This document shows, in pieces, positions 1,776-25,072 of a DNA stretch of 64,000 bases. The notes below the pieces were generated by a model, which saw only the letters and a program-made list of their open reading frames with translations, made no database searches and had not been told where the DNA came from. Within the stretch, counting starts at the first letter, position 1, and each line of letters opens with the position of its first letter. The DNA comes from Mobula hypostoma. Lineage: Eukaryota. The position numbers and the translations under genes were made by a program. The stretch is taken from NCBI RefSeq assembly GCF_963921235.1, contig NC_086124.1, forward strand, positions 24,490,001 to 24,554,000. The letters are read 5' to 3'.

Positions 1776-1859
1776 TCTTCATGGCAACTTTATTTGATAC
1801 GTGAGATACCTAATGAAATAGCTGCTGAGTGTTAGTCAAAAATACTGATGGTCCACTCG

Positions 1860-2999: not shown

Positions 3000-3044
<45 letters not shown>

Positions 3045-5150: not shown

Positions 5151-5154
5151 CCAG

Positions 5155-5534: not shown

Positions 5535-7927
5535 TGCATTTCCACCGGGTTCATATTAATTTGGAAATGTGGCGACTGATCAGGGAACATCGGCGTGTCT
5601 GTGTTGCGCAAGAAACCTTGTCTTCCTGCATTCGGGAGGTTTTTCAGGAGATAACTCAGTTAGCTAGTGAAGGCAGGACAGTGGGTTTCTCAACATGCAC
5701 TTCAATGAGGAGAACATTAGAGATTACAGAGTCTGGGCTTGTTTTCCATGCGGTCGAAGAACGCTGACGGATGACCTGACAAAATAAATTAAGATAACAG
5801 ATACAGAGACAGTGTAGACAGAATCGCTTTCCCATGGTAGGAGCAAAATTGAGAGGAAGGCTTATATTTATACCGAGGAATGGAGATTTAAGTCGAATAT
5901 AAGGGATTTTTTTTTAGAATTTGTTTTAATTCTCAATTCGATTTCGAGATACAGCGCGGTAACAAGCCCTTCCGGCCCTACGAGACCGCCCCGCCCAATT
6001 ACACCCATGTGATCAATTAACCTATTAGAGTCTCCAGCCTTCTGGGCTTGAAAGGCTTATCATGTGAGGAAGGTGTTTTGGTCCTGGGCTTCTATTCACT
6101 GGAATTTAGAAGAATGAAACGGGACTTCGTTGAAACCTGTGGAATGTTGAAAAGCCTCGACACAGTCGATGTGGAGTAGATATTTCCTATGTTGTGGGAA
6201 GCTAAGAGCAGCCGACACAGTCTCAGAAGGGAAGGCCGTCCTTTTAGAAGGGAGATTCTGATTAATTTCTGAAGCCAGAGAGTGGTGAATCTGTGAAATT
6301 CATTGCCACAGGGAGCTCCATGTTTCTGTATTTTTAAGACAGAGGTGATTGATTCTTGATTGGACAAGACATGCCCGGAAACAGGGGGAAGGCAAGAGGT
6401 TGGTGCTGAAAAGGAATATGGCGGAACAGACTCTGTGAGCCAAATGCTGGTAGTGGTCGAGGTCGTTTATACGCTGATGAGAGGCAGAAATGGAGTAGAC
6501 AGACAGTATCTTTATTTTTCAAGTGTTGAAATGGCCAGTACCAGAGGGCGTGCCTTTAGCGTGAGTGGGGGTAAGATGAAAGGAGATGTGAAGGGTAAGT
6601 TATGTTTTCACAGAGAGCGGTGGGGGCCTGGAATGCGCTGAAAGAGTGGTGGTGGAGGCAGATACATTGCGACTGTTAAAAGTCTTTTGAATAGGAACAT
6701 GAATGTGAAGGAAATGGACATTTTGTCAGCAGTCGCGATTAGTTACGTTGGCCGTGTGATTACTAATTTAATTGGTTCGGTATAATATCGTGCACTATTC
6801 CTGTGCTGGGTGATTCTGTGCTCTTGCAGGACTCTGCAAAGCGTCCTGGGCACATTTCTGTAGTGAGGGTGACTTCGACTTTTGCACAGTATTGTATTTG
6901 TCAACGAAGACCGGAGAGCGTCGGGCGGAAGCAAATGATGATGGGAATGGCGAAGGTGAAGCGCCTCGGGAGGGATGAGGGACAGGTACCAGAGAAGGAG
7001 AGCCAGGGACGGTGCTGGAGGCGGTTGCTGGCTCGGATGCAGACACGCGCGGACCTGGGACACCAGGGAAGGTCATTTGATTCTAAACAATTCGTTTAGT
7101 GATTATTACAGAATGACCCTCTGGTGCTTCCCGCTTCCTCCCATCTCGCTTCCCGCTTTCCCAATCATGATTCCCTTCTCCCAGCCCCCTTACCACTCTC
7201 AGTCCACAACAAATACACATGTCAGAATCTGGTCACTCACATACATCATGAAATTTGGTGACAGTGCAATCCATCAAATTAATAAAGTGCTGTTTAGTGA
7301 TAGTAACCGGCCCAACGAGCCGCACTGCCCATCAACCTACCTGGTTAACCACAGAAAAGATCATGAAGGTCAATCAACCTAAGTACCAGAACGTTTTTGG
7401 AATGTGGGAGGAATGCAGAGTACCCAGGGGAATCCCCCACGGTCACGGGAGTGAGTATTAGTGGTGGTAGTCGCTTGATCGCTCGAGTCCAGTATGATGT
7501 TCTTCTAAGGGATTGTCATCCGCGGGTCCTCGGCTGGCTGTAGAGGCCGATCCAGGATCAACATAACGGCAGTGTTCGGGTGCATTCCCTTAATGGAGAT
7601 CGGCTGTGCGTGACTTTGTCTAACGTGGGGAAGCTAATATACGGGCTGACATCACATGGTCGTTGACAGGTCGGGGACATGCCGGGGGGACGGTGCGGTC
7701 AGGGTCCAGTGGCTTGGAATGCAAGACGACTGTGGTCTCTGCGCTGACGCAGACATCCGCCGCCTTGACGGCCGTTGTGGTGTATCAGGTTTCTGCTCCG
7801 TATTGCACCGCATCTCTGCCCGCCTTCCTCTCTTTCCCTCATCGCTCTCGCCTGTCCTCCTGAATTCGCCGTCTCTCCATTCTGCACCGCTCTCACTTCC
7901 ACAATATCTCCCCCACCAGATCCGACA

Positions 7928-8884
7928 ATGTCGTTCTCCGAAGGAGTGTCCAGTTCGACGCTCGCTGGGAATCTCTCCTCCCACAATTCCACGGCCGATG
8001 GAAACAGAATGGAGTGGGGAGCACCTTCCGTCATATCAATGGTCATCTTCACCCTCACCTTCCTACTGGGCGTCCCGGGCAACGGCGCAGTCATCTGGGT
8101 GACCGGCTTCAAGATGAAGAGTAAGATCCACACGGTGTGTTTCCTGAACCTGGCTCTGGCTGACCTAATCTATTGCCTGACCCTTCCCTTCCGCATGACC
8201 AACATCATCCTGAGCTACTCTGGGCACAAAACCTACTTTCCCTGGAAGTTTTCTGGAACCTTGATGTTCCTCAACGCCTCCGCCAGCATATATCTGTTAT
8301 GTCTGATCAGCATCTGCCGCTGCCTGGCTATTACTCGGTCCACCTGGTTGCAGCAGCATCCGAGCCTCACATGGGTTCGTGGGGCCTGCTTCGGAGTCTG
8401 GATCCTAGCCTTCGTCATGTGCCTGCCTATCCTCCTGCTTCAGGATTTCAAGAAGCAATTGGCCGTGTTGGAGCCATTTTGGTTTGTTTGCATCTTCTGC
8501 CTCCCCATGGTTATTATGATCACCTGCTACTCCCTGATTGGCTGGAAGCTGCAAGGGAACAAGTTCGTCAAATCTAAGAAACCTGTACACCTCATCATCA
8601 CCGTTGTCGTCACCTTTATGATCTGTTGGTACCCCAATGCTGTCTGCGACCTCGTTTCAACCTTCTCCACACCGATTCCCGGAGACTGGTGGTTATTCAC
8701 TGTAGCCTTGGCCTCCTTCAACAGCGCCCTCAACCCCCTTCTCTATGTCTTCGCTGGCCGCGAATTCCACCAGGCCTTCAGGCGCTCTTTTGTCACGTCG
8801 CTCCGTCTGACCCTCGCCGAGCAGAGGCTAGAATTGCAGACCCAGACCCAGACCGGGAACCTCACCTCAAATAGAAATGTCTGA
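7928..8884 (+). CDS. Class A GPCR, chemoattractant receptor-like (C3aR/CMKLR1/FPR family), copy A, 318 aa, single coding exon
   Basis: 7 hydrophobic helices with LGVPGN (TM1), FLNLALAD (TM2), ISICRC (TM3), W4.50, CWYP (TM6), [13 protein letters not shown] (TM7); N-terminal NLS/NST glycosylation sites; polypyrimidine-CAG acceptor at 7917-7919 just before ATG 7928. Confidence 0.92.
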   Translation: MSFSEGVSSSTLAGNLSSHNSTADGNRMEWGAPSVISMVIFTLTFLLGVPGNGAVIWVTGFKMKSKIHTVCFLNLALADLIYCLTLPFRMTNIILSYSGHKTYFPWKFSGTLMFLNASASIYLLCLISICRCLAITRSTWLQQHPSLTWVRGACFGVWILAFVMCLPILLLQDFKKQLAVLEPFWFVCIFCLPMVIMITCYSLIGWKLQGNKFVKSKKPVHLIITVVVTFMICWYPNAVCDLVSTFSTPIPGDWWLFTVALASFNSALNPLLYVFAGREFHQAFRRSFVTSLRLTLAEQRLELQTQTQTGNLTSNRNV

Positions 8885-9799
8885 GGGAGTTCGTAGGGAC
8901 AGACATCCGACCGATATCCCCTGAATACAGACACAGTGGACAGTCCGAAGCAATTGTGCTCGGCAGTGCAATCTTTCAGAACATGGAACATAGAACAATC
9001 GGCCTACAATGTATCGTATCAATTCAATCAGTCGATAAATGCCCAATTAACCTCATCCTCTCTGCCTACACAAAGGCGATATCCTTCCCTTTTACACATT
9101 CGACCTATCTAAACATCTCTTAAAGGCCTCTAACCATTCTACTCTCACCATTTCAGCAGCGTATACCAGGCACACACCACTGTCTGTGTAAATAACTTGC
9201 CCCTCGCATTTCCTTTGCAATGACGCCCTCTCACTTTAAATGCACGTCCGCTGGTATTAGACATTTCAAGCCTGGGAAGCATACTGAATATCCATGCCTT
9301 TCATGATCTTCTATACCTTATCCCGCCACCCCAGTGAAAATAACCCAAGTGTGTTCAACCTCCCGTAGTCGACGATGCTCTCTAATCCAGGCAGCATCCT
9401 GGTGCACCCTCTGCACCCTCTGCAAAGCCTCGACATCTTTCCTGCAATGGGCGACCAGAACTGTATACACCTCTTTCACCAAGTAGTCTCCATCTTCCTA
9501 TGACCTCTCGCCTTACAAGTCATTTTCACCCTCAGAACAGGATGTATTTTTTCGCTGCCTTCCCTGTAAACTCCACAGAAATCAGAAGTTACTGAAATAT
9601 TCAAAACAATCTGTCTGGCGTGAACTATCATCCGCCATCAAACTCACTTAGATCACATTTCTTCCCCATTCTGATGTTTGGTCTGAACAACAACTGAATC
9701 TCTTGATCATGTCTGCAAGTTTATACGCATTGCGCTGCTGCCACATGATTGGCTGAATAGATGTTTGCATTGACGAGCAGGTATTCAGGTCGACCTAAT

Positions 9800-10270
9800 A
9801 AAGTGGCCTAATGTATTGTAAAGGTTCTGAATATCAAAATAATAGTATAAAGAGCAGTAAATTGTAAAACAAAAAAACAAAATCAGATCAATATGTGCTG
9901 TTACCACCCTCTGCCTTTAAAGCTCCATCACTTCTCTTACTTCCACTGTCGTGTAGTTTTATACGAGAATCGGCTGGATCCTGGAGCATCCTGGAGAACT
10001 TGCCACGGTCCTTCAGCACACCTTGGCTCACTCGCTTGCTCCTGTTTCTCCAGGTGATCCCAGGCAGCCTCGATGATGTTGTGGTCAGGTCCCCCTGGAC
10101 ACCATGCCACTTAAATCCACACATAAAAAATCTAGCGGACCCAGGACATTGGCACAGTATTAGCTGGATCCTTTGATAGACATCTTCACGGTGCACAGCT
10201 CAACCAAACCCTTGTGTCGATAACCCATCTATTTGCATCTCCATCCATGTTATTAATATCTATTACAAAC
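9800..10270 (-). mobile_element. Old Tc1-like transposase C-terminal remnant
   Basis: KLHDSGSKRSDGALKAEGGNSTY resembles the Tc1 C-terminus (...AVxKAKGGxTKY); copies at ~23330-23700 and ~34480-34950. Confidence 0.65.
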
Positions 10271-10559
10271 AGCTGAAATTCCTGGCACTTCTCTGTGACG
10301 AAAACCGCTGGACCTGCCTTACACTCAGAATAATACCCACCACCGCCCCCCCCCCCCCCCTTCTTTGGACATGCCAAATTTGAATCCAGGGAACAAAGAC
10401 GCCGTGGATTCCGTCCATAATGCACATTCAGTACTATCACCTCAGTGTTTCGGCCCGGTTGTGGTTGAAAGATTGGCGCCCTCTAGAGGCGCTGTCCACT
10501 GTATACCACTTCCTGCAAGCAGGGTGATTTTTCCTTTCTCTCTGATATGAAGCACACCA

Positions 10560-11500
10560 GAGACAAGATCTCAGTTCATTCTTTGGCTTTGTACAGCAAT
10601 ACATGTGAGTCTTAAGCTTTTAGCAATTTTAATAAAAGTTTCGTGGACATATTTTGAACAAAATTCGTGATTATACTCCTGTAGACTGTATAGATATTGT
10701 GTACATGTACCGTGTCCTGCTAAAACTACCCGACTTGTATGCGATAAAAACAGTGTTATAGGGTTGTGATTATCTTAAGACAACAGCAATTCTTTAGAGA
10801 TCAATCAATTTCCATGCCACATTCCCGTCAACTGCAATTAAATTCTGAAAGTTACAGGTGTGTATGACGTCACTGCAGTTTTCCAGGATGGCATTGGGAT
10901 CCTCAGACTTGTCAACGATAAAATACTATTAAATGAAAATAACACGCCCGCCTTTTAGAAATCCGATCTGCTTCCTTATACCATCCGGGACATAGTAGCC
11001 GGTCTGCGAGATTATAGGGACGGCTTTCCGCTCAAGTTGGAATGGAGCCTACGGACAAGACCAGTAGTCCCAAGTGCCAAGAAAATTCGTCCTGCAGGAT
11101 CTGTGCTGACTTTAAGGTCACCATCGATTCAATACTCAAAGTAGATCAATCCCATTGACCAGGATAGAGAATATCTTTGCAAACCGTTCTGAAGGAAAAG
11201 ACCTCAGCAAAATGGTCTTAGCTGAGCCCTACATACAGATAGAGAGGGAAGAAGAGTCCAATCTGTTTCTCAGTCCTTATCGCTTAATAGGCTTGTTTTT
11301 AGAGTTGCATTTGCACCTGCAGTCTGTCAGAAAGCTACGGACCAGGTTCTGGAAAGCTGCCGGGGAACCTAGATTACATCATTGTTACCGGTAAGGCTGA
11401 CAAGGAACATCTTCAAAGTCTCATGACAGCGTTAAAAAGATGAATAGATTGGGGGTTCTGAACACGACGCAAGTGCGAATTCCTTACGCCAAGCATCCTT
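10560..11500 (+). mobile_element. Gypsy LTR-retrotransposon pol (RT) remnant
   Basis: RICADFKVTI..ILKVDQ and RIENIFANRSEGKDLSKMVLAEPYIQ resemble Gypsy RT motifs; partial copies at ~24000-24540, 35570-35720 and 36880-37250. Confidence 0.75.
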
Positions 11501-11549
11501 ACAAAGGTGGCTGCGGTTGTCTGTAGAATCAGCCCGCACCGTCACGGGC

Positions 11550-13520
11550 AGAAATGCGGCCGCCATCAAGGAAATCTTCAAGAGGACTGCATGCATCATT
11601 AAAAACTCTAACCACCTGGGGACAAGCCCTCATCCCGTTACAATCACGGGAGAGGAGGTACAGGAGCCCGAAGATCCACACTCAGTGATTCAGGAAACAT
11701 TTCTTCCTGACCGTCATCTGAACAGCCCATGAACATGACCACACGACTGCTTTTTATTCTACAAACTCATTATGTATTTTGCAATTTGTAGTAATTTTTA
11801 GTATTTTGCTCCAACAAATCAACAAATTTCACGCCAACTATATTGCGATGATAATAAGCCAGATAAAACGATACGCTCGACTTTTATTGTGTCAACACCG
11901 ACCATTAAAATTCCCCATGTCAACAAATCGCGTTACAATTTCACGCGGGGCAACCCTTGCCGTCCGTTCAGGGGGAGCACAGGGCAAGGACCTGGGTCCA
12001 CGAGCATCTGAAGCCACGACCCACCCGAATCCGCTTTTTAAAGTGATTTCTTCTTCCTCCAGTCTGTCCTTTCGCTCCTCGGTGGGAAGTCCAAAGAGCA
12101 CCCCTCCGCTCAATGTATCTCCCGCCACCGCGCCCTCCCCTCTCCCCGGCTCCTGGCTCAATCGACCCAAACATGACGGCGGGAGCAGAGGCAGCGGCCA
12201 ACGGCGACGACCAACTGCGTTTCTATCCATTGGTTGCTGCACCTCGACCGGATGCCTCGGGACGGAGGAGGACATAAAAGAGCTGAGGCGCAGGGTGAGA
12301 CAAAGGCAGATCCGCACGCCGGGAAAACAGACAGCAGACACAAACACGGAGCAGCGGCGTAATTCTTCGTGGTCTACGCATGCGCGCTGCCATGGAGGTT
12401 CCTGGGGAATGTAGTCAAAAAAGGCTCCATCTTCAAATAATTTGAATGCGCTTTTTGTGATTCAACTTCTTGTCCGTCCTGTTCTGCTATGAATGACAGC
12501 ATGTTCGGGGAACATGGAAAGCGTGATGGACCGAGACACTGGCATTTAGGGCGGTAATGATGGTCTTCCGTCTCTGGCGGAGTTCATCATCGTGTCAGTA
12601 GCTTCGTCTCTGTCTTCACTACTGTTAGACATCCGGGGTGAAGACTCAGGAATATCATCGCACTCAGATGTAGAAGGATGCTTCATTGCTGTTTCCATAA
12701 CAGTTTTGTTTTGCTAGTCAGGGTTAGCCCTGTGCTGAAACCCCGAGCCTGGAGGACTAGTGGATCACTCCTAACCTGGGGCCTATCCTGAGATTTCTTC
12801 GGCACAGGTGACCCTATCAAGAGAGAAGGCATGAAGGCCTAACTCTAGCCAACATTGTTCTTCGGGCCATTGAGACACACAAGCCTCCAAACCCCACGAC
12901 GAGGTTGTCGTCCTTTTGAAGGAATGAGGAGATTAAAAGAAAAGGCGGCAGGCGGTAGAGTAAATCCTTCCCCACTGGGCTTAGGTCAAATCTTAAGAGT
13001 CATCCGTGGTGCTTAAAAGTTCTAGAGAGACGGGAACTGCCGCCAGTGAGGGCAGAGCAACTGCGACTCGCAAAACAAAAGAAACGCGAGGTAGGCAGCT
13101 CGAGAATCCTAATGCTCGAGACCCCCCACCCTCCCACACCCCCACACATTCCAGTCACCTCAGGTACTACTTTCCTGCTCTCATGCACACAGTGCGGAGG
13201 GTGAGAATACAGCCCCGTACCGCCCATGAACGATAGCGCGCCCGGGTAACGGGAGAGCGAGGCGTACAGGAACACTGGCCTGGGAGAAAGTTCCGAAAAC
13301 AGACGGATGCAGGAAGGGAGAAGTCAGAGATCTGTACACATGACCCCACCCTCCGCAGCAACCTCAAGCAAATAACACAAAAACTAAAGACGGCGGATAT
13401 GCAAAGCAGACGGGGAAGAGAGATCCACAGGGCCGGTGGGAAGACAACATCCTTTTGCGATAAGGGAGAGACTTGTTACTTCCACCAGCAACGAGCTTCC
13501 TCACACAAACTACAGCGCAG
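11550..13520 (+). pseudogene. Decayed partial duplicate of the LAGE3 locus (promoter, exon 1 at 12173-12222, intronic pieces) plus a RAB7-like 3'UTR fragment
   Basis: ATGACGGCGGGAGCAGAGGCAGCGGCCAACGGCGACGACCAACTGCGTTT aligns gap-free with LAGE3 exon 1 (39873-39922); the donor GTATCCTT has become CTATCCAT. 12580-13140 matches ~41820-42360 and 13277-13515 matches ~43829-44070. Exons 2 and 3 are absent. Confidence 0.85.
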
Positions 13521-16390
13521 ACTCTCCATGCACCTGTCTCGCCAAATCTGGCAGGGATGAAGGTAGAGCAGCGGTGGCTGAAATTTCTGGCAGCCATCAG
13601 AAGACAAGCGATCGATACAGCCCAATGCGGATGTAGACTAACGGCAAGATGACGCAACCATGGCTATAAAGGGAAGTCAGCGCCAACATAAAAAAACAAA
13701 GTGAGGGCATATCATAGAGCAAATTTGTGGAATGCTAGAGGATTGCTAAGCTTTTACAAACCAACAGCAAGCAGCTCCAAAAGTCATTAATGCACGGATT
13801 CAAGACAAAACTAAGCTAGTCAACAGTATTAAGGAGGATACCAAATGTTTCTTCAGATGCATAAAGTGTGAAACAGAGCCAAGAATCGATATTGGGCCAC
13901 TGGTAAATGATGTTGGAGAGGTAGTAGAGGAGGATAAAGATATGATGGACGAACTGAATAACTGTTTTCCATCAGTCTTCCCTCTGCAAGACACTAGCAG
14001 TACGGTGGAGGTTCAGCATGTCAGAGGTCATGAAGTGTGTAAGGTCACCATTACCTGAGAAGATTCTTCGGAATCTGAAAGCCTGAAGGTGGATTAGTCA
14101 TCTGGACCCGATGGTGTACACCCCAGGGTTCTGAAAGAGATGGCTGAAGAGGTTTTGAAGGCATTAACTGACGAAATGGCAAGAAGGATAGCCAAAAGAG
14201 AATCGGTTGATGTTGTGTACTTGGATTTCCAGAAGTCTTTTGTGAAGGTGCCACACCTGAGGTTACTTAATAAACTACGACCCCATGGATTTACCGGAAA
14301 TATTCCAGTATGGATAAAGCAGTGGCTGCTTAGCCGGAGGCAGAGAGCGGGAGCCTTTTCTGGCTGGTTGCCGGTGACAAGTTGTTTACCTCAGGGGTCT
14401 CTGATTAGTCCGATTCTTTTTACATGATATGACAATTTGAGTGACGGAATTGATGGCTATGTTGCTAATTCTGCAGACGGTACAGATGGATTAGAAGTTA
14501 GTTTTGATGGAGTAGTGAGGCTACAAAAGATCAGAAAGATAAGGAGAATGGGCAAAGAAGTACAGGATGCAATACAGTGTCGGGAAATATATGGTCATGC
14601 ACGTTGGTAGAAGAACTGGAAGTGTTGACTATTTTCAGAATGGATAGAATTTTTTTCATGAGGTGTAAAAGGATTTGGGTTTCCTCGTGCACTACACCCT
14701 GAAGGTTAATTTGCATGTTGATATTGTGGTGAGGAAAGCAGACGCGATGTTAACATTCATTTCAAAAGGATACAGAATCTAAAAACAAAGAAGTGATGTT
14801 CAGAATTAATGAAGCAATGCAGGGGTCTGATTTGCACTATTGTGAGCAGATTTGGGCCCGTTTTCTCAGAACGAATGTGCTGTAACTGGAAAGTGTTCAC
14901 AGGAGATGTACGGAAATCTTTCCAGGGTTGAAAGACTTGTCATGTGAAAAGCGTTTGATGGCTCTGGACCTGTAATCACTGGGATGAGCGTAGGCTAATT
15001 GAACTCTATCGGACAGTGAAAGGCCTGTATAGGGTCGATATGGAGAAAAGGTTTCCTTTGGTGGAACAGTCTAATACCACGGAACATAGTCTCGGGGTAG
15101 AGGAGAGGCCTTATTAGAACGGAGATAAGGAAGAATGTCCTTAGCCAGAAAGAAATGAATCTGTGGAATTCGTTGACGCGGGCAGCTGTGGAGGACAAGT
15201 CTCTTCATGGCAACTTTATTTGATACTTGAGATACCTAATCAAATAGCCGCTGAGTGTATGTCAAAAATACTGATGATCCACTCGATTAGATTATGAGGT
15301 CACTCAGTCCTCGTTTATTGTCATTTAGAAATGCATGCATTAAAAAGTGCTACAATGTTCCTCCAGAATGATATCACAAGAAACACAGGACAAACCAAGA
15401 CTGAAACAGACAAAAACACATAATTACAACATATAGTTACAACAGTGCAAAGCAATACCGTAATTTGATAAAGAGCAGAGCATGGGTACGGTAAAAAAAA
15501 AAGGAAAATAAAATAACAATAAAGAAATAAAAATAAATATTGACAACTTGAGTATTGAGCTCTTGAAAATGAGTCGGTAGGTTGTGAGATCTGTTCAGTG
15601 TTGGGGTGAGAGAAGTTATCTGTTCTGGTTCAGCAGCCGGGGATGGTCGACGGGTAATAACTGTTCCTGAACCTGGTGCTGTTGCTACCGAAGACACTGA
15701 TGCCTCCTGCCCGATGGCTGCAGAGGGAAGGGAGCAGGCCTGGATGGCAAGGTGCTTGCTGATGGATGCTACTGTCCTGTGACGGCTCTCCTCGCAGATG
15801 TGCTCGGGTGGTGGCGAGGTCTTTACCTGTAATGGAGTGCTAAAGCCCTCCCGAGACGCCGTGAATCCGTACATACTGCACAGTGAATGCGATACAGCAG
15901 AAATTGCTGTAGTGCAGTATTTTGGAATTTGACCTTGTAATGAACTTTTGAAATAACTCAGTTTCCTCGGCGGCTTAAGTCCAGAGAATTCAATCTCCGG
16001 CCCCGCCAAACCCGTGATATTGAGGCGCAATCCCACCCAAAATCCCTTGTTTCTGTGGATGTTGTATAATTCACTACCCTATTAAACATTGGTGTGACGA
16101 CATAACAGACTGTCCACCGTACACGATCAAAAGATTTAACTTTGCACTTCCTAATTTGACGAAAGGGTTAATAAAGAAAATAACAAAATAAGGAAAGGGC
16201 CCATTTTAATGTAACAGTCTAATATGCACCAGTTGGAGCAGTTCGGAGCAGCGACATTTCGGCAAAAGCAATTTATTAAAAAGAGCCAGTAACAATAATT
16301 CAAGTACAACCTGAGCGGCCATTCTTTTGAGTGAGCCGGTCTTTAGAGTCGCTTTGGATAATTAGGTATCGGCGAGATCAGGCTTGGGAG

Positions 16391-16559
16391 NNNNNNNNNN
16401 NNNNNNNNNNNNNNNNNNNNNNNNNNNNNNNNNNNNNNNNNNNNNNNNNNNNNNNNNNNNNNNNNNNNNNNNNNNNNNNNNNNNNNNNNNNNNNNNNNNN
16501 NNNNNNNNNNNNNNNNNNNNNNNNNNNNNNNNNNNNNNNNNNNNNNNNNNNNNNNNNNN
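16391..16559. other. Assembly gap (169 N)
   Basis: Run of N at the position homologous to the microsatellite of unit A. Confidence 1.
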
Positions 16560-19500
16560 ATTTCTTATACTTTAGTGAGAACAGCTTCAAGAGCAGTGTT
16601 TTGTACTCTGTGTGGCATGCGGGATGTCTGTGAGACCTCCGGAGGCCCAGATAAACACATGCGAGCCAGGTGCACCGAGTTGCAGTCCTGACATTAACGT
16701 ATTAATGAACTGGAGCTGCTGCTCCACGACCTTCGACACATACGGTAAAATAACGAGGTGATTACAGCAGCTATCGGGAGGTAGTCAACTCTAGAATTCA
16801 TGACACAGGTAACTGGGTGACTGTCAGGACAAGGATGGGAAATACACGGCCAGTGCAGAGTATACCTGCAGCTATTCCCCTCAATAATTAGTAAACAACT
16901 TTAAGAACTGTTGAGGGGGACAAATTACCAGGCATGGGAAAGCACAGTGACCGGGCCTCAGGCACTGTGTCTGGTGCTGTGCCTCACCAGAGCAGAGAGG
17001 TAAAGACGACTGCAGTGTTGACAGTCAAAGAAACGGAGATGATGTTCTGTGGGCTCGGTAATGACACTAGATTGGTACGTGGCCTCCCTGATGCCAAGAT
17101 CAGTGATGTATCTGAACGGATCCATGGCATTCCTCAAGGCGAGGGTGAACAGCCAGAAGTCTTAGTATGCATTGGCACCAATGAACCAGAGACACAAAGT
17201 GAGGAAGACTTGAAGAGATTTTTGGGAGCTCGGTAGAAAGCTGAGAATCAAGACGACCGGGGTACTAATCGATAGACTGCTGCCTGTGCCATGTGACATT
17301 GATCGTAAGCATTGGAAGAATTGCCAGGTAAACGAGTGGCTGATGAGCTGGTGTAGGGGGCACACACGGGTTCAGATTTAGAGATCACCGGGATCTCCCC
17401 TGGGGAAGCTATGTCCTGCACAAAAGGGACGGATTACACCTGAACGCGACGATGTCTAATATCCTTGTGGGCGGGTTCGCTGAAGTTGTTCGGGAATGTT
17501 TTTGGCAGGGTAGTGGGAACAAGAGAGATAGTACTGAATATGAGGCAGCTGGTTTACAAACAGAGACAATGTGTAGTGAGACTATTAGCAAGGAAAGGCT
17601 AATGACAGGAGAAATTTCAGTCAACAGGATGAGTCGCAACGTAAAAGCCGGACAAAATCGAAAAGGGCGACCAGTGGACTGAGGGTGTTGCATTTTAATT
17701 CACACAGCATACGGCATCAGAGAGATGAACTTGTATTGTAGCACAGTTACAGATTTCCATGCATGATAGCGAGGGCATTACTGAATCGTGGCTGAATGAA
17801 GATTGTATCTGGGAGCTTAATGTCCAAGGATACACACTGTATCGAAAGGTCAGGCAGGAAAGTAGAGGGGAGGCGTGACTCTGATGGTAAAATACAAATG
17901 AAATGAAATAATTGCGAATAGAACTAAAGAACTGCAACTGCAAGAAGCCCCAGATGAAGTTTTTGTTATTGTGGAATTGAGTAGAAAGCTTTATGTAAAA
18001 AAAAACCCAAAGGGGAAGTGATCATAATATAAACGAATTTACTTTGAGAAGGAGAAGCTAAAAGCAGGTATATTAGTTTTACAGCAGTTAAAGTGTTTAG
18101 AGTCATGAGAGCGGAGCAGGCCAGAATTGATTGGAAAATAACACTGGAAGGGATGACGTCAGAGCAGCAATGGTTGGAATTTCTGGAAACAATTCAGAAG
18201 GCAACACATGTACAGATCTCAAACAGGAAGAAGTATTCTACAGGCAAATTGAAACGATCATGGGCAAGAAGAGAAGTTAAGACCAACATAAACCCAAATA
18301 TGGGTTATAGAATGGCTAGATATTTAGGGGATTAACAAGCTTTTAAATAGCAACTGGAAAAACTAAGAAGATAATAAAAAGCTCCAGATGGAATAGGAAG
18401 GTAAGCTCGCCAAAAATATTAAAGAGATACAAAATGTTTCTTTAGAGACGTAAAGTGTGAAAGAGAAACGAGAGAGGTGATACTGGACCGCTGTAATAAG
18501 GTGCTGGAGAGATACTACTGGGGGACACGGAAACGGCGGACCACCGGAACAACTATTTTACATCAGTGTTCATTGTGGGAGACACCAGCATGAAGTCTGT
18601 GAATTCACTATTCCTAGGGAGAAAGTTTTGGGGAACCTCAAAGGTCTGAACGTAGATAGATCACATGGACTAGAGGGGGTTAATTTCAGAAATTAACCAC
18701 GTGGCCTCTTTATCTGCTTTACTTCTCCAAAATAAAAGGAAATGTTTTGTTCTTGAGAGCTTGCTGAGTAAAGTATTATCTCCTGATGTCAACACCTCAG
18801 CTTCCTCATATTGAGCTTCTTGGAACTTCAAACCCAAAGAATCTCTACCGAGGTGCACTAACTCATCTCGTCGGTGCATTCCGAATTAAGACCCTACTTT
18901 TGCTAAATCAGCATCCAAGTTCCGCATAAGACACAACTCCTCAATATATCTCGAGCACCCGAAGAAACCCACCGTCGAATTTAACGTTTGAGTGCAAGTA
19001 TACAAAACTGCTGAGGACCGGGACACAGCCGGAGACTCCACGGACAGGTGAGATGCATTTCCACCGGGTTTATATTAATTTGGAAATGTGGTGACCGATC
19101 AGGGAACATCGGCGTGGCTGTGTTGCGTAAGAAACCGTGTCTTCCTGCTTTCGGGAGGTTTTTCAGGAGATAACTCAGTTAGCCAGTGAAGGCAGGACAG
19201 TGGGTTTCTCAACATGCAGTTCAATGAGAAGAACTTTAGAGATTACAGAGGTTGGGCTTGTTTTCCATGCGGTCGAAGATCGCTGACGGATGACCTGACA
19301 AAATAAATTAAGATAACAGATACAGAGCCAGTGTAGACAGAATCGCTTCCCGTGGTAGAAGCAAAATTGAGAGGAAGGCTTATATTTATCCCGAGGAAAG
19401 GAGATTTAAGACGAATATAAGGGATTTTTTTTTTAGAATTTGTTTTAATTCTCAATTCGATTTCGAGATACAGCGCGGTAACAAGCCCTTCCGGCCCTAC

Positions 19501-21401
19501 GAGACCGCCCCGCCCAATTACACCCATGTGATCAATTAACCTATTAGAGTCTCCAGCCTTCTGGGCTTGAAAGGCTTATCATGTGAGGAAGGTGTTTTGG
19601 TCCTGGGCTTCTATTCACTGGAATTTAGAAGAATGAAACGGGACTTCGTTGAAACCTGTGGAATGTTGAAAAGCCTCGACACAGTCGATGTGGAGTAGAT
19701 ATTTCCTATGTTGTGGGAAGCTAAGAGCAGCCGACACAGTCTCAGAAGGGAAGGCCGTCCTTTTAGAAGGGAGATTCTGATTAATTTCTGAAGCCAGAGA
19801 GTGGTGAATCTGTGAAATTCATTGCCACAGGGAGCTCCATGTTTCTGTATTTTTAAGACAGAGGTGATTGATTCTTGATTGGTCAGGACATGCCCGGAAA
19901 CAGGGGGAAGGCAAGAGGTTGGTGCTGAAAAGGAATATTGCGGAACGGACTCAATGAGCCAAATACTGGCAGTGGTAGAAGTCGTTTATACGCTGATGAG
20001 AGACAGAGATGGAGTAGTCAGACAGTATCTTTATTTTTCTGGTGTTGAAATGGCCAGTACCAGACGGCGTGCCTTTAAGGTGAGAGAGGGTAAGATCAAA
20101 GGAGATGTGAAGGGTAAGTTACGTTTTCACAGAGAGCGGTGGGGGCCTGGAATGCGCTGAAATAATGTTGGTGGAGGCAGATAAATTGAGACCGTTTAGA
20201 GTCGCTTGGATAGGAACATGAATGTGAGGAAAATGGACATTGCGTCAGCAGTCACAATTAGTTACCTTGGCCGTCTGAATACTAATTTAATTGGCTCGGT
20301 ATAATATTGTGGACTATTCCTGGGCTGGGTGATTCTGTGTTCTTGCAGGACTCTGCAAAGCGTCCTGGGCACATTTCTGTAGAGAGGGTGACTTCGACTT
20401 TTGCACAGTATTGTATTTGTCAACGAAGACCGGAGAGCGTCGGGCGGAAGCAAAGGATGATGGGAATGGCGAAGGTGAAGCGCCTCGGGAGGGATGAGGG
20501 ACAGGTACCAGAGAAGGAGAGCCAGGGACGGTGCTGGAGGCGGTTGCTGGCGCGGATGCAGACACGCGCGGACCTGGGACACCAGGGAAGGTCATTTGAT
20601 TCTAAACAATTCGTTTAGTGATTATTACAGAATGACCGTCTGGTGCTTCCCGCTTCCTCCCATCTCCCTTCCCCTTTCCCCAACCATGATTCCCTTCTCC
20701 CAGCCCCCTTACCACTCTCAGTCCACAACAAAGACCCATATCAGAATCTGGTCACTCACATACATCATGAAATTTGCTGACATTGCAATGCATCAAATTA
20801 ATAAAGTAATTTTTTGTGATAGTAACTGGCCCAACGAGCCGCACTGCCCATCAACCTACCTGGTTAGCCACGGGGAAGTTCACAAAGGTCAATTAACCTG
20901 AGTACCAGAACTTTTTTGGAATGTAGGAGCAAAGCAGAGTACCCAGGGGAATCCCCCACGGTCACGGGAGTTAGTGTTATTGGTGGTAGTCGCTTGATCG
21001 CTCGAGTCCAGTATGATGTTCTCCTAAGGGATTGTCATCCGCGGGTCCTCGACTGGCTGTAGAGGCCGATCCAGGATCCACATAACGGCAGTGTTCGGGT
21101 GCATTCCCTTAATGGAGATCGGCTGTGCGTGACTTTGTCTAACGTGGGGAAGCTAATACACGGGCAGACATCACATGGTCGTTGACAGATCGGGGACATG
21201 CCGGGGGGACGGTGCGGTCAGGGTCCAGTGGCTTGGAATGCAACCCTAATGTGGTGTGTCAGCCTTCTGTTCCATGTTACACCGCATCTCTATTCGCCTT
21301 CCTCTCCTTCCCTCTTTCCTCTCGCCTCTCCTCCTGAATTCGCGGTCTCTCCATTCTACACCCCTCTCACTTACACAATATCTCCCCCACCAGATCCGAC
21401 A

Positions 21402-22343
21402 ATGTCGTCCAGTTCGAAGCTCGCTGGGAATCTCTCCTCCCACAATTCCACGGCCGATGGAAACAGAATGGAGTGGGGAGCACCTTCCGTCATATCAATG
21501 GTCATCTTCACCCTCACCTTCCTACTGGGCGTCCCGGGCAACGGCGCAGTCATCTGGGTGACCGGCTTCAAGATGAAGAGTAAGATCCACACGGTGTGTT
21601 TCCTGAATCTGGCTCTGGCTGACCTGATCTATTACCTGAACCTTCCCTTCCGCATGACTAACATCTTCCTGAGCTACTCTGGGCACAAAACCTACTTTCC
21701 CTGGAAGTTTTCTGGAACCTTGATGTTCCTCAACGCCGCCGCCAGCATATATCTGTTATGTCTGATCAGCATCTGCCGCTGCCTGGCTATTACTCGGCCC
21801 ACTTGGTTCCAGCAGCATCCGAGCCTCACATGGGTTCGTGGGGCCTGCTTCGGAGTCTGGATCCTAGCCTTCGTCATGTGCCTGCCCGTCCTCTTGCTTC
21901 AGGATTTAGAGAAGGAATTGACCGTGTTAGAGCCAATTTGGTTTGTTTTCATCTTCGGCCTTCCCTTTGTAATTATGATCACCTGCTACTGCCTGGTTGG
22001 CTGGAGGCTGCAAGGGGACAGGTTCTTCGAATATACGAAACCTGTCCGCCTCATCATCACCGTTGTCGTCGTCTTTATGATCTGTTGGATCCCCAACACT
22101 GTCTGCGACCTCGTATCAACCTTCTCCACACCGATTCCCCGGGACTGGTCGTTATTCACTGTAGCCCTGGCCTCATTCAACAGCGCCCTCAACCCCCTTC
22201 TCTATATCTTCGCTGGCCGCGAATTCCGCCAGGTCCTCAAGCGCTCCCTTCTCGCCTTGCTCCGTCTAGCTTTCGCCGAGCACAGTCTAGAACTGGAGAG
22301 CCAGGCAGAAACCCGCAACCTCATCTCAAATACAAATGTCTGA
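21402..22343 (+). CDS. Chemoattractant receptor-like class A GPCR, copy B, 313 aa
   Basis: Intact ORF with the same motifs as copy A ([37 protein letters not shown]); acceptor CAG at 21391-21393; 15 bp shorter N-terminus. Confidence 0.92.
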   Translation: MSSSSKLAGNLSSHNSTADGNRMEWGAPSVISMVIFTLTFLLGVPGNGAVIWVTGFKMKSKIHTVCFLNLALADLIYYLNLPFRMTNIFLSYSGHKTYFPWKFSGTLMFLNAAASIYLLCLISICRCLAITRPTWFQQHPSLTWVRGACFGVWILAFVMCLPVLLLQDLEKELTVLEPIWFVFIFGLPFVIMITCYCLVGWRLQGDRFFEYTKPVRLIITVVVVFMICWIPNTVCDLVSTFSTPIPRDWSLFTVALASFNSALNPLLYIFAGREFRQVLKRSLLALLRLAFAEHSLELESQAETRNLISNTNV

Positions 22344-24723
22344 GGGAGTTCCTCGTGGACAGACATCCGACCGATATCCCCTGACTACAAACACAGTGGA
22401 CAGTCGGACGCAATTGTGGTCGGCAGTGGAGGCTTTGCTACACTCCTATTTTCATCTCTCAGAATGTAAAACATAGACCATTCAGCCTACAATGTACCGT
22501 ATCAATTCAATCAGTCGATAAATGGCAATTAACCTCATCTCCTCTGCCTACACAATGGCGATATCCTTTCTTTTTACTTATTCTACCTATCTAAACATCG
22601 CTTAACCTATCTCTAACCTCTAACCTACCTCTAACCTATCTGCTCTCACCACCATTTCAGCAGTGTATACCAGGCACACACCACTGTTTGTGTAATTAAC
22701 TTGCCCCTCGCATTTCCTTTGGAATGACGCCCTCTAACTTTAAATGCACGTCCTCTGGTGTTACACATGTCAACCCTGCGAAGCATACTGAATATCCATG
22801 CCTTTCATGATCTTCTAAACCTCATCCCGCCACCCCAGTGAAAATAACCCAAGTGTGTTCAACCTCCCGTAGTCGACGATGCTCTCTAATCCAGGCAGCA
22901 TCCTGGTAAACCTCTGCACTCTCTGCAAAGCCTCGACATCTTTCCTGAAATGGGCGACCAGAACTGTATAAACATCTTTCACCTAGTAGTCTCCATCTTC
23001 CTATGACCTCTCGCCTTACAAGTCATTTTCACCCTCACAACAGGATGTATTTTTTCGCACCCTTCTCTGTAAACACTACAGACTGTCGTACGTGAAAATC
23101 CCATTTAATCAGCAGTTTCTGAAATACTCTAAACAATCTGTCCGCCGTGAACTATCATCCGCGGTCAAAGTCACTTAGATCACATTTCTTCCCCATTCTG
23201 ATGTTTGGTCTGAACAACAACTGAATCTCTTGACCATGTCTATATGTTATTATACATTGCGTTTCTGCCATATGATTGGCTGATTAGTTGTTTGCTTTGA
23301 CGAGCAGGTATTCAGGAGTCCATTATAAAGTGGCCTAATGAATTGTAAAGGTTCTCAATGTCAAAATAATACCATAAAGAGCAGTAAATTGTAAAACAAA
23401 AAAACAAAATCAGATCAATATGTGCTGTTACCACCCTCTGCCTTTAAAGCTCCATCACTTCTCTTACTTCCACTGTCGTGTAGTTTTATACGAGAATCAG
23501 CTGGTAGGTTATCCCAAGCGTCCTGGAGAACTTGCCACGGTCCTTCAGCACACCTTGGCTCACTCGCTTGCTCCTGTTTCTCCAGGTGATCCCAGGCAGC
23601 CTCGATGATGTTGTGGTCAGGTCCCTCTGGACACCATCAAACCCTTGTGTCGATAACCCATCTATTTGCATCTCCATCCATGTTATTAATATCTATCACA
23701 AACAACTGAAATTCCTGGCACTGCTCTGTGCGGAAAACCGCTAGACCTGCCTTACACTCAGAATAATACCCACCGCCTTCCCCCCCCCCCCCCCACCTTC
23801 AATGGACATGCCAAACTTGAATGGAGGGAACAAAGACGCCGTGGATTCCGTCCATAATGCACATTCAGTACTATCACCTCAGTGTTTCGGCCCGGTTGTG
23901 GTTGAAAGATTGGCGCCCTCTAGAGGCGCTGTCCACTGTATACCACTTCCTGCAAGCAGGGTGATTTTTCCTTTCTCTCTGATATGAAGCGCACAAGAGA
24001 CAAGATCTCAGTTCATTCTTTATTTGCCTTTGAACAGCAGTACCCGTGAGTCTTAAGCTTTTAGCAGTTTTAATAAAAGTTTCGTGGACATATTTTAAAG
24101 AAAATTCATGTTTATGCTCCTTTAGACAATATAGATATAGAGAACATATAAAAATTACTTGATCCTTTCTGCAGTAAAACAAGAAGGGCTAGCATTGTAG
24201 GGGGCCGATTGGCTAAGATAACTATTTTGGAGATCAATCAATTTGCATGCCACATTCCCATCAAGTGAATGCAAATTAAGAAAATTACAGCAGTGTTCAG
24301 GGATGGCATTGGGAAACGCAAACATGTCAAGGGTAAATCGTGTTAAGTAAAAATGCCGCACCCACGTTTTACAAATCTGGTCTAGATCCTTATCTTATAC
24401 TATCCATGACAAAGTAGCCAGTGAGCTAGACCATATAGAGACTGAAGACATTCGACCAAGGTTGAGTGGAGCCTGTGAGCAATACCAGCGGTCCCAAGAG
24501 TCAAGGGATTTGAGCCTGCCAAGATCTGTGGTGATTTCACCACTTTCTGGCTGAAAAAAAAAATTCTCCGCATCTCTGTTTTAAAAGGATGCCTTTCTAC
24601 CCTGAGATTGTGCCCTCTTGTCCTAGACTCCAGCACCATGCGAAACATCCTATCAACGCACACAAAATGCTGGAGGAACTCAGCAGGCCAGGCGGCACCT
24701 ATGGAAAAAAGAACAGTCGAACA

Positions 24724-25072
24724 TTCGGTCCTCCCCTTTCCAATTATGATCACCTGCTATTCCCTGGCTGGCTGGAGGTTCGCCAAATTTAACAAACCTG
24801 TCCGCCTCATCATGACCGTAGTCATCACCTTTATGATCTGTTGGAAGCCCAACGCTGTCTGCAACCTCCTATCAATCTTCTCCATACCGATTCTCACGGA
24901 TTGGTCATTATTCAATGTGGCCCTAGCCTCCTTCTCTATGTCTTCGCTGGCCGCGAATTCCACAAGGTTTTCAGGCGCTCCCTCCTCACCTCGCACCGTC
25001 TGGACTTCGCCGAGCGAAGAATTGGCGAGCCAGACCCAGACCCGCAACCTCACCCCAAATACAAATGTCTGA
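24724..25072 (+). pseudogene. 5'-truncated GPCR copy (TM5 to C-terminus only)
   Basis: LPFPIMITCYSLAGWR...FMICWKPNAVC...; 15-bp and 22-bp internal deletions, the latter removing NSALNP and shifting the frame; fused to a Penelope-derived repeat at TTCGG. Confidence 0.9.

Follow-up and report, generated by a model that had tools for sequence, protein, structure and literature searches.

What kind of receptor is encoded by a gene that resembles the C3a anaphylatoxin receptor (C3aR) and lacks both the TM3–ECL2 disulfide and nearly all of ECL2? Such genes occur in a 64,000-nucleotide stretch of DNA from the devil ray Mobula hypostoma (the window, to whose positions all coordinates below refer). 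We found two intact receptor genes there (copies A and B), one with two frameshifts (copy C) and one 3′ fragment (copy D), arranged as follows.

1–31776, forward strand: tandem segmental duplication bearing the receptor array (self-blastn).
7886–7919, forward strand: polypyrimidine tract with a terminal AG, 8 nt ahead of the ATG of copy A (sequence).
7928–8884, forward strand: copy A, intact single-exon class A GPCR of 318 amino acids (open reading frame).
16391–16559, no strand: assembly gap (N), intergenic, between copies A and B (sequence).
21402–22343, forward strand: copy B, intact single-exon GPCR of 313 amino acids, with W3.25, ICRC and a 25-residue span as in copy A (open reading frame).
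22627–23187, forward strand: stretch 3′ of copy B, probably its 3′ UTR (exact contigs in run X1).
24731–25072, forward strand: copy D, pseudogene running from TM5 to the C terminus only (DNA alignment, tblastn).
30291–31232, forward strand: copy C, full-length and frameshifted (DNA alignment columns 711 and 931, tblastn, Pfam).

Self-blastn resolved the duplication, with a unit size of roughly 9–13 kb, into unit 1 (about 1–13500), unit 2 (about 13772–24138) and unit 3 (about 25480–31776), which are 86–98% identical to each other depending on the segment. Open reading frames upstream of the receptors recur at 6743–7382, 20262–20901 and 29198–29746. The assembly gap lies 7.5 kb past the stop of copy A and 4.8 kb ahead of the ATG of copy B, and no receptor reading frame crosses it; because both flanks are collinear with their counterparts in the paralogous unit (unit-A positions 2941 and 3070), order and orientation across the gap look continuous. 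Copies A and B match Pfam 7tm_1 (E 1.2e-32 and 1.9e-32), the best solved relative of copy A is human C3aR (E 1.7e-53), and their orthologs in Mobula birostris are P0002 (90.6% identical to copy A) and P0005 (92.3% identical to copy B). In copy C, one base too many near 30984, past CWIP, and one too few near 31203/31204 put TM7 and helix 8 out of frame, as a preliminary description of this DNA had said of TM7, with the last ten codons back in frame; tblastn places the frame switch at 30982–30989, and the Pfam match ends at profile position 218 of 260. Copy D, which is absent from that description, carries internal deletions of 15 nt and 22 nt, is 52% identical to residues 192–318 of copy A by tblastn and gave no match in a Pfam search. 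Copies A to D form one birth-and-death array, in which C and D are dead.

The intact copies share an unusual architecture. Counting from R131 as 3.50, position 3.25 of copy A is W106 (in YFPWKF), and all window copies readable at this position have Trp in place of Cys. Residues 3.49–3.51 of copy A are C130-R131-C132, so that ISICRC places Cys at 3.49, and ICRC is also found in copies B and C. Exactly 25 residues separate P4.59 from P5.50 in all three copies (P167 to P193 in copy A). Each of these features had been read correctly in the preliminary description, which had also proposed an ECL2 of about seven residues without Cys. The lack of Cys held: the only two span cysteines of copy A, C188 (5.45) and C191 (5.48), sit inside TM5, and the P4.59–P5.50 span of copy B has none. 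The length is shorter in the AlphaFold2 model of copy A (pLDDT 79), which has TM4 at 147–170 and TM5 at 174–207, reducing ECL2 to a 3-residue turn predicted with moderate local confidence (pLDDT ~74). Aligning copy A to human C3aR sets Trp opposite C95(3.25) and ICR opposite DRC, and the alignment leaps from 173 to 352, bypassing the large ECL2 of C3aR. We found no replacement extracellular Cys pair in the ray family; a Cys has been gained and conserved at 2.42, close to the cytoplasmic interface where 3.49 lies.

This architecture extends well beyond the window. The derived family comprises at least 82 annotated proteins from five batoid species (Hemitrygon, 26; Hypanus, 23; Pristis, 13; M. 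birostris, 11; M. hypostoma, 9), with nearly all members in each species on one or two contigs; the public protein sets contain intact models only, and these counts carry no pseudogenes. D3.49 is present in none of the 82, being replaced by C, Y, F, V, S, L or H, whereas it is found in 113/113 other chemoattractant-type receptors readable at that position, all of which also keep C3.25, and this argues that the combination of W3.25, ICRC and a short span reflects shared ancestry, not chance. In our tree, the 73 full-length derived members form one clade (SH-aLRT 99) that branches from within the canonical anaphylatoxin-type receptors of elasmobranchs, and the clade is still recovered when the trait columns are removed, in which case the tree requires one state change only. 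A single branch carries the loss of C3.25, the ECL2 Cys, D3.49, 16 ECL2 residues, R5.42, Y6.51 and D7.35. Canonical elasmobranch copies have C3.25 and D3.49, and their span is 46 residues long and contains one Cys; C3.25, DR, the ECL2 Cys and R5.42 are kept in all 79 additional chemoattractant-type receptors that we compared (from sharks, chimaera, teleosts and tetrapods). Two canonical M. hypostoma receptors, P0072 and P0097, share a chromosome with the derived copies and keep the canonical features. The family is a ray-specific clade, in line with the lineage specificity first suggested for it, and the anticipated mislabelling is real, its members being named publicly 'C3a anaphylatoxin chemotactic receptor-like' or 'N-formyl peptide receptor-like'. 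We found no paper describing this ray family in the literature.

N1.50, D2.50, CWxP and NPxxY are unbroken in copies A and B, as previously noted for the TM1, TM2 and TM6 motifs, and the derived clade retains all core activation switches except D3.49 (N1.50, D2.50, S3.39, R3.50, W4.50, P5.50, Y5.58, F6.44, CWxP, N7.45 and NPxxY), with microswitch residues 90–100% conserved within the derived classes. Human C3aR contacts R77 of C3a through D417(7.35), Y393(6.51), R340(5.42) and Y174(ECL2) (PMC10518620). The canonical clade shows no variation at these contact positions, which are substituted in the derived clade (W185 at 5.42, N237 at 6.51 and W255 at 7.35 in copy A), where R4.64 is also replaced. 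Entropy was higher in the extracellular than in the intracellular half of the bundle, both in the 25-residue class to which the window copies belong (0.76 versus 0.43, p 2e-5) and in the 30-residue class (1.76 versus 0.89, p 4e-13), and higher in the classic pocket than at other TM positions (0.87 versus 0.52, p 0.002, and 2.02 versus 1.13, p 5e-7, respectively), whereas the canonical clade showed no such contrast (0.57 versus 0.56). The most variable single site in the 25-residue class is position 3.25.

Copy B may be transcribed, as it has exact contigs in two probable RNA runs: a 748-nt contig without differences in run X1 (21486–22233) and a 189-nt contig in run X14 (22156–22344), the RNA nature of runs X1, X14 and X23, for which tissues are given as codes, being a guess. 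The exact copy-B contigs in run X1 have a depth of ~7 in a run that totals only 143 Mb of contigs, and the unique upstream sequence 20842–21483 has a depth of 0–2. Further 3′, segments 22627–22877 and 22890–23187 are matched in run X1 without differences. A run from organism B, likewise guessed to be RNA, has contigs with two differences that distinguish P0005 from copy B (K6T and N10S), and one contig of organism B, probably RNA, begins to match at 21391 after 78 unmatched letters. The polypyrimidine–AG tract ahead of copy A, with its equivalent ahead of copy B at 21360–21393, hints at a candidate 3′ splice acceptor of a non-coding 5′ exon.

The explanation that we favour is that copies A and B belong to a ray-specific, tandemly expanding class A GPCR offshoot of the C3aR/C5aR-like lineage. 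The subfamily split from canonical elasmobranch anaphylatoxin-type receptors, losing on its stem branch the TM3–ECL2 disulfide, 16 ECL2 residues, the acid of DRY and the Arg/Asp/Tyr triad that holds the C-terminal Arg of C3a, after which ECL2 shortened again to the 3-residue turn of the model. Because the TM activation machinery and the intracellular half are retained, the receptor should remain able to switch and to couple. Its orthosteric pocket is lidless, aromatic and hydrophobic (W3.25, W5.42 and W7.35 in copy A), and varies more among paralogs than any other part. As a working model, the likeliest is a sensor repertoire, each member tuned to a different non-C3a ligand entering the open pocket, with a weaker inactive-state lock that may allow easy or partly constitutive activation, like that of MRGPR receptors. 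Mutating D3.49 increases basal activity in several GPCRs (PMC9287403). The data demonstrate the architecture, its single origin, the retained switches, the loss of the C3a contacts, the pocket-centred variability and the open frames; the ligand class, a raised basal activity and an immune or sensory cell type we infer. Taken as a whole, sensor repertoire included, we regard this explanation as reasonably probable.

The rates of evolution in the window speak against it. Nei–Gojobori dN/dS is 0.71 for A–B, 1.28 for A–C and 1.03 for B–C, and by rate the window copies evolve nearly neutrally (omega ~0.5–1.3), with no regional contrast between extracellular and intracellular parts in the window pairs (0.46 versus 0.99 for A–B). 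Divergence of copy B from its ortholog in M. birostris amounts to 4.0% over the coding sequence and 3.4% over the flanks, and 4 of the 24 amino-acid differences in this pair strike family-conserved positions, about the chance expectation of ~4.2; extracellular enrichment of differences is significant for the A pair only (p 0.02; combined p 0.12). Together with the two clearly dead copies among the four, these values suit a reading in which A and B were inactivated not long ago or are drifting, their frames still open by luck, and the architecture reflects relaxed constraint in a decaying array. We nevertheless consider this improbable: the architecture is old, occurring in 82 intact proteins from sawfish to devil rays with conserved microswitches; copies A and B are open, as are their two M. 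birostris orthologs, whereas in simulations of neutral drift over the A/B divergence a frame survives in 0.1–4% of trials per lineage; no invariant motif residue is altered in A, B, P0002 or P0005; and exact copy-B contigs are present in the probable RNA runs. The proposal that a coordinated loss remodelled the pocket and left it lidless, and that this is not decay, is supported at the level of the family, where the losses fall on one branch, and fits less well the near-neutral and half-broken set in the window. The accompanying suggestion of a different ligand class or altered basal signalling likewise holds for the family as a probable reading.

A somewhat more credible alternative, though still an unlikely one, is that these are ligand-independent or non-canonical receptors (constitutive, arrestin-biased or 'atypical' decoys comparable to C5aR2 or the atypical chemokine receptors) and not tuned sensors. 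The substitution of D3.49 in every member, the conserved Cys gained at 2.42 by the same interface and the higher basal activity of D3.49 mutants of other GPCRs (PMC9287403) would all fit, as would the altered DRY (DLC) of C5aR2, a member of the same receptor group (PMC10518620). However, C5aR2 has lost R3.50, whereas the ray receptors keep R3.50, Y5.58 and NPxxY for G-protein engagement, variability concentrated in the pocket is hard to square with the lack of a ligand, and a decoy would not be expected to have dozens of diversified paralogs. That the automatic names are right, and the family still consists of anaphylatoxin (C3a/C5a) or formyl-peptide receptors, is very improbable. The top sequence and fold matches are indeed C3aR, followed by FPR, CMKLR1 and C5aR1, and the family descends from the canonical C3aR-like clade; yet all four contacts of the terminal Arg of C3a (D7.35, Y6.51, R5.42 and the ECL2 Tyr) are gone, the ECL2 hairpin with its acidic or sulfated binding site is absent, R5.42 is lost here and invariant in 79/79 other chemoattractant receptors, and the fully canonical P0072 and P0097 are present on the same M. 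hypostoma chromosome. The ray family looks like a new, fast-evolving sensor family, neither decay nor true C3a receptors.

Such a sensor family can be compared with several known systems. Its closest relatives are C3AR1 (human C3aR, E 1.7e-53; fold TM-score 0.72–0.74) and canonical elasmobranch 'C3aR-like' genes (P0072 and P0097 of M. hypostoma, P0088 of Scyliorhinus canicula), with which it shares a chromosome cluster, a single coding exon, the TM1, TM2, TM6 and TM7 motifs and xRC at 3.50–3.51. The P4.59–P5.50 span is 20–30 residues in the ray family versus 46 in canonical elasmobranch receptors and ~170–190 in tetrapod C3aR, and, unlike C3AR1, the ray family lacks the C3.25–ECL2 disulfide, D3.49, R5.42, Y6.51, D7.35 and R4.64; because of the lost disulfide, ECL2, D3.49 and contact residues, it is not a C3a receptor by ligand-contact criteria. 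Rodent vomeronasal FPRs retain the canonical disulfide, ECL2 and DRY, having changed in expression and not in architecture. They are a precedent for an immune chemoattractant lineage giving rise to a tandemly expanded chemosensory family (PMC7873101). MCR and CB1 are absent from the top sequence and fold matches. The melanocortin and cannabinoid/lipid receptors are unrelated lineages that keep the DRY aspartate. These class A receptors also lack C3.25 and C45.50, and in MCRs ECL2 is very short and the vestibule wide open (PMC9287403). No MRGPR is among the best 60 sequence matches or the best 50 fold matches; the MRGPR-defining C4.64–C5.33 disulfide is absent from the ray family, which keeps W6.48 and the sodium-site residues that are absent in MrgD. 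The MRGPRs form a lineage-specific family that evolves fast and has expanded in tandem. In common with the ray family they lack C3.25 and C45.50, and MrgD combines a very short ECL2 of 8 residues, which leaves its pocket solvent-exposed, with a non-acidic 3.49 (Q-R-C) and high basal activity (PMC9287403). The ECL2 of the ray family is shorter still, and MrgD and the MRGPRs are probably its closest functional analogue, by convergence and not by descent.

The following features of the receptor array, among them four related receptor sequences (copies A to D), were located in the window, the four copies by ORF listing, Pfam and tblastn:

7928-8884, + strand: copy A, intact class A GPCR of 318 amino acids
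21402-22343, + strand: copy B, intact class A GPCR of 313 amino acids
24731-25072, + strand: copy D, TM5 to C-terminus only, carrying 15-nt and 22-nt deletions
30291-31232, + strand: copy C, frameshifted by an extra base near 30984 and a missing base near 31203/31204
about 1-13500, 13772-24138 and 25480-31776: tandem duplication units, mutual identity 86-98% by segment
16391-16559: N gap, intergenic, inside unit 2

Copies A and B match Pfam PF00001 (7tm_1) with E values of 1.2e-32 and 1.9e-32. The extra base in copy C falls directly 3′ of its CWIP codons and, because of this single-base gain and the later single-base loss, TM7 and helix 8 are off-frame, with the final ten codons back in frame. 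The flanks of the N gap are collinear with unit 1 positions 2941 and 3070, and order and orientation therefore look continuous; no receptor ORF lies across the gap. Copies A, B and C are near-identical over their first ~100 codons (7928-8230, 21402-21690 and 30291-30580; dS 0-0.07) and have diverged in the 3′ third (dS 0.16-0.26), a mosaic that suggests gene conversion among the tandem copies. Short stretches flanking copy B (20521-20841, 22875-22981 and 23089-23302) are high-copy interspersed repeats, with contig depths from the thousands to above 100,000 in all runs compared. A frame-broken LINE-type reverse transcriptase in three successive ORFs lies directly 3′ of copy C (32318-34010, + strand), and RAB7-like GTPase exons fall within ORFs 50613-51092 and 51267-51755 (- strand).

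Residue counting in copy A, with R131 as 3.50, confirmed the tryptophan at 3.25 (W106, in YFPWKF), the cysteine at 3.49 (C130, in ISICRC) and the P4.59-P5.50 span of exactly 25 residues (between P167 and P193) that the preliminary description had reported, all common to copies B and C. The copies were also said to lack a cysteine in ECL2, and this holds: the only cysteines in the span of copy A are at 5.45 and 5.48, both in TM5. Aligning copy A to human C3aR with phmmer (E 1.7e-53) paired the tryptophan with C3.25 and ICR with DRC; the alignment runs in two pieces and skips from C3aR residue 173 to 352, the giant ECL2. An AlphaFold2 model of copy A, with an 81-sequence family alignment as input (mean pLDDT 79, pTM 0.73), has seven TM helices and helix 8. 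As modelled TM4 (147-170) ends at 170 and TM5 (174-207) starts at 174, ECL2 is predicted to be a turn of three residues, shorter than the roughly seven first estimated.

The 7tm_1 match and the seven-helix fold place the receptors in class A. The TM motifs described as clean are indeed so, apart from the off-frame TM7 of copy C: copies A and B have N1.50, D2.50, CWxP and NPxxY unaltered, together with the other activation microswitches R3.50, W4.50 and P5.50. Absent from A, B and C are the usual C3.25-C45.50 disulfide and the acidic residue at 3.49, which are typical of class A (conserved in more than 90% of it; PMC9287403) and not obligatory.

Protein searches returned more than 100 proteins of 300-350 amino acids from M. 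hypostoma, M. birostris, Hemitrygon akajei, Hypanus sabinus and Pristis pectinata, almost all of them on one or two contigs per species. Their automatic names are 'C3a anaphylatoxin chemotactic receptor-like' or 'formyl peptide receptor-like', the mislabelling that had been anticipated. A canonical kind, which sharks and Narcine share, has C3.25, (I/V)DR and a P4.59-P5.50 span of 46 residues (44 in Narcine) with one cysteine. In the derived kind (82 proteins), neither D3.49 nor the ECL2 cysteine occurs in any member; in place of the aspartate stand Y (27 proteins), C (24), F (13), V (8), S (7), L (2) and H (1), position 3.25 varies widely (W in 30 members, C in just 6), and the span is 30, 25 or 20-22 residues (the last called the 21-residue class).

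In a maximum-likelihood tree, all 73 full-length derived proteins form one clade (SH-aLRT 99) inside the canonical elasmobranch clade; the phylogeny, proposed as a check, shows a family of single origin. Rerunning the tree with more outgroups and without columns 3.25, 3.49, 6.51, 7.35 and the ECL2 region with the first TM5 residues (among them 5.42) left the outcome unchanged, with one change of state (support 99). The 30-residue class, which holds all Pristis members, is basal within the derived clade, and a 42-member subclade of Myliobatiformes only (support 100) splits into the 21-residue (IYR) and 25-residue (ICR) classes, the window copies belonging to the latter. Copy A is orthologous to P0002 and copy B to P0005, both from M. 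birostris (support 99). Position 1.48 (P50 of copy A) is Leu in both P0002 and P0005, where Pro stands in copies A and B and in over 90% of the family; the change arose either in parallel or by paralog conversion within M. birostris.

In all of 79 additional receptors of the chemoattractant type, drawn from sharks, chimaera, teleosts (expanded short cyprinid genes among them), amphibians, reptiles and mammals, C3.25, D3.49-R3.50, the ECL2 cysteine and R5.42 are kept. Parallel loss in the cyprinid 'C3aR-like' genes (313-318 amino acids) was considered and rejected, with C3.25, DRF, the ECL2 cysteine and R5.42 all present. Word-indexed protein searches found no derived member beyond Rhinopristiformes and Myliobatiformes, and only a canonical homolog in the electric ray Narcine. 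The same searches returned neither canonical nor derived homologs from skates (Rajiformes), a result that does not by itself prove absence: skates may have lost them, or word-indexed searching may have missed them.

Conserved at 90-100% in all derived classes are N1.50, L2.46, D2.50, S3.39, L3.43, R3.50, C3.51, W4.50, P5.50, Y5.58, F6.44, C6.47-W6.48-x-P6.50, N7.45 and N7.49-P-x-x-Y7.53. The positions that are invariant in canonical and variable in derived receptors (the ECL1 W-P pair, 3.25-3.33, 4.60, 4.64, 5.39, 5.42, 6.51, 6.52, 6.58, 6.59, 7.31 and 7.35) are nearly all extracellular or in the pocket. In human C3aR, the terminal Arg77 of C3a is held by D417(7.35) through a salt bridge, by Y393(6.51) through a cation-pi contact and by R340(5.42) and Y174 of ECL2 through hydrogen bonds, and the receptor disulfide joins C95(3.25) to C172 (PMC10518620). 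The canonical elasmobranch clade has D7.35 in 13 of 13, Y6.51 in 12 of 13 and R5.42 in 13 of 13 members; copy A has W255, N237 and W185 at 7.35, 6.51 and 5.42, and its ECL2 tyrosine is lacking along with ECL2. A search of the derived family for a conserved extracellular cysteine pair, of MRGPR type or joining the N-terminus to ECL3, found none. Its conserved cysteines are at 2.42, 2.54, 3.44, 3.49, 3.51, 4.46, 4.57, 5.57, 6.47 and 6.54, of which 2.42 (C71 of copy A) was gained by the derived clade (88-100% versus 8% in canonical receptors) and 3.44 (C125) in the 21- and 25-residue classes. Both gained cysteines are near the altered 3.49, which may point to remodelling of the cytoplasmic TM2-TM3 interface.

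Column entropy in derived and canonical receptors.
25-residue class: extracellular versus intracellular helix half, 0.76 versus 0.43 (p 2e-5); classic pocket versus other TM positions, 0.87 versus 0.52 (p 0.002)
30-residue class: extracellular versus intracellular helix half, 1.76 versus 0.89 (p 4e-13); classic pocket versus other TM positions, 2.02 versus 1.13 (p 5e-7)
Canonical clade: extracellular versus intracellular helix half, 0.65 versus 0.51 (p 0.085); classic pocket versus other TM positions, 0.57 versus 0.56 (p 0.52)

Judged from the alignments, the family as a whole does not show the pattern of decay. In the 25-residue class, no site varies more than 3.25. Six Hypanus and Hemitrygon proteins of one 25-residue sub-branch (P0017, P0018, P0021, P0022, P0023 and P0029) have regained a cysteine at 3.25, which is the most variable site of the family; the cysteine is unpaired, with no ECL2 cysteine as partner. 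The earlier proposal of remodelling rather than decay stands at the level of the family; for the copies in the window the rate data are weak. Nei-Gojobori dN/dS was 0.71 for A-B, 1.28 for A-C and 1.03 for B-C. The three pairs gave no signal of positive selection on the pocket and no contrast between the two halves, with omega of 0.46, 1.18 and 0.97 in the extracellular half and 0.99, 1.16 and 1.15 in the intracellular half.

The M. birostris ortholog of copy B was read over ~650 coding bases from DNA-run contigs of a second organism (organism B) aligned to copy B, an identity assigned because 10 of the 24 amino-acid differences that mark P0005 recur in the contigs. Copy B differs from them at 26 of 645 coding positions (4.0%) and 29 of 857 flanking positions (3.4%), and one fully listed piece of 357 nt has about 8 non-synonymous and 5 synonymous changes, giving a rough ortholog omega of ~0.5-1.1 over those ~650 bases. 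A recent rate of 0.5-1.1 times neutral is therefore as consistent with relaxed constraint as with diversifying and purifying selection acting together. The ortholog proteins differ at 24 of 313 residues for B and 30 of 318 for A, with differences enriched on the extracellular side for the A pair (p 0.02), not for the B pair (p 0.78), and p 0.12 combined. When copy B was evolved neutrally in simulation over the per-lineage A/B divergence, the ORF stayed open in 0.1-4% of trials; A, B and both M. birostris orthologs are open, with invariant motif residues unhit. This survival argues against pure drift.

None of the genes was found in runs recorded as RNA. Of the words sampled from copy B, 61% occur in a run guessed to be RNA (X1, organism A, only 143 Mb of contigs). 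This run has a 748-nt contig equal to 21486-22233 and two more that match 22627-22877 and 22890-23187 exactly; depth is ~6-8 in all three and 0-2 over the unique upstream stretch 20842-21483. DNA runs X6-X13 assembled 1.7-2.8 Gb of contigs. X1 is most simply a transcriptome, because a whole-genome run at such depth would assemble gigabases; most simply, and suggestively only, copy B and a long 3′ UTR are expressed in it at a low level. An exact 189-nt contig (22156-22344) occurs in run X14, which belongs to the same study, and none in run X4. A guessed RNA run of organism B (X23) has contigs with P0005-specific letters, one of which matches from 21391 on and is preceded by 78 unmatched letters. 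Its match begins at a polypyrimidine-AG motif that lies 8 nt 5′ of the ATG in both copies (7886-7919 in A, 21360-21393 in B), which may, again suggestively only, be the splice acceptor of a non-coding 5′ exon.

In the derived receptors the cytoplasmic half and all transmembrane switches are conserved, residue 3.49 is neutral in every member, charged anaphylatoxin contacts have become aromatic and aliphatic residues, and paralog pocket positions are hypervariable. We infer, as the likeliest mode of action, that the pocket would be open to solvent, with each paralog reading its own non-C3a ligand, and that loss of the D3.49-R3.50 lock would leave the inactive state less stable and activation easy or partly constitutive. 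Our tentative proposal is that rays may have independently evolved, from an anaphylatoxin receptor, a previously unrecognised MRGPR-like class that is disulfide-free, lidless and constitutively primed, with dozens of genes in Rhinopristiformes and Myliobatiformes serving as a chemosensory or granulocyte/mast-cell-type xenobiotic-sensing repertoire. The DRY change would suit constitutive or decoy receptors with no tuned ligands, an unlikely reading with which the pocket-focused variability and the kept R3.50, Y5.58 and NPxxY do not fit. Drift of copies A and B toward pseudogenes agrees with their rates and with the dead copies C and D next to them; it does not agree with ORF survival, with how old the family is or with the probable transcripts, and we regard it as quite improbable. 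The lost contacts contradict a true C3a or formyl-peptide receptor, a reading that is very improbable indeed.

Few features of class A are as conserved as the TM3-ECL2 disulfide and the DRY aspartate, and in the chemoattractant group ECL2 forms part of the ligand site. A clade of at least 82 genes shed all three at one time, and the anaphylatoxin contacts with them, and then diversified at length with the other activation machinery kept, and canonical sisters in the same genomes make it a clean, phylogenetically polarised natural experiment on the need for the lost elements. The family reached the open-pocket design of MRGPR type by a second route, independent of the first. If our proposal of an MRGPR-like class is true, that experiment is one in which a peptide GPCR works with a three-residue ECL2 and without the DRY aspartate. 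Classical odorant receptors are very few in cartilaginous fishes, and the family could then be their missing sensory receptor family; if sensory, it would be a new vertebrate chemoreceptor class. A large ray repertoire misnamed as C3a or formyl-peptide receptors would also mislead comparative complement immunology of cartilaginous fishes. No account of the family or its architecture was found in open-access papers or preprints, including the river stingray genome paper. The proteins are already public under misleading automatic names; what is new is a structural variant within chemoattractant-type class A GPCRs, not a new type of system.

Among known systems, descent from the C3aR/anaphylatoxin lineage is borne out by C3aR as the best PDB match and by the nesting of the derived clade in canonical elasmobranch C3aR-like receptors; deep nodes bearing on orthology of the elasmobranch clade to C3aR versus C5aR have support of 0-24. 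Despite this descent, the derived family fails as a C3aR in its ligand contacts because the contact residues have been replaced: copy A has none of D7.35, Y6.51, R5.42 and the ECL2 tyrosine, and the C3.25-ECL2 disulfide, the ECL2 beta-hairpin and the acidic/sulfated secondary site are missing (three-residue turn in the model, no loop cysteine in the 25-residue span). The top sequence and fold matches are all C3aR, FPR, CMKLR1, C5aR and relatives. Identity as a formyl peptide receptor is rejected by the E values (human C3aR 1.7e-53 versus FPR2 3.7e-43) and by the tree, which places FPR2-like proteins of monotremes and marsupials outside the group of anaphylatoxin and elasmobranch receptors. C5aR2 has lost R3.50 (DLC), whereas the derived family keeps R3.50 in 63 of 64 aligned members and loses D3.49.

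Descent from MRGPRs is likewise rejected, with no MRGPR among the 60 best sequence or 50 best fold matches, and the conserved C4.64-C5.33 disulfide of MRGPRs (PMC9287403) is lacking in the derived family. The likeness, in absent C3.25 and C45.50 and a short ECL2, is convergent. MrgD has an eight-residue ECL2, neither C3.25 nor C45.50, a ligand in a shallow exposed pocket, and Q3.49-R-C with high basal activity; mutations of D3.49 raise basal activity in several GPCRs (PMC9287403). MrgD is, by analogy and through convergence, the closest worked example for the derived family; it is without W6.48 and the sodium-site residues that the derived family has.
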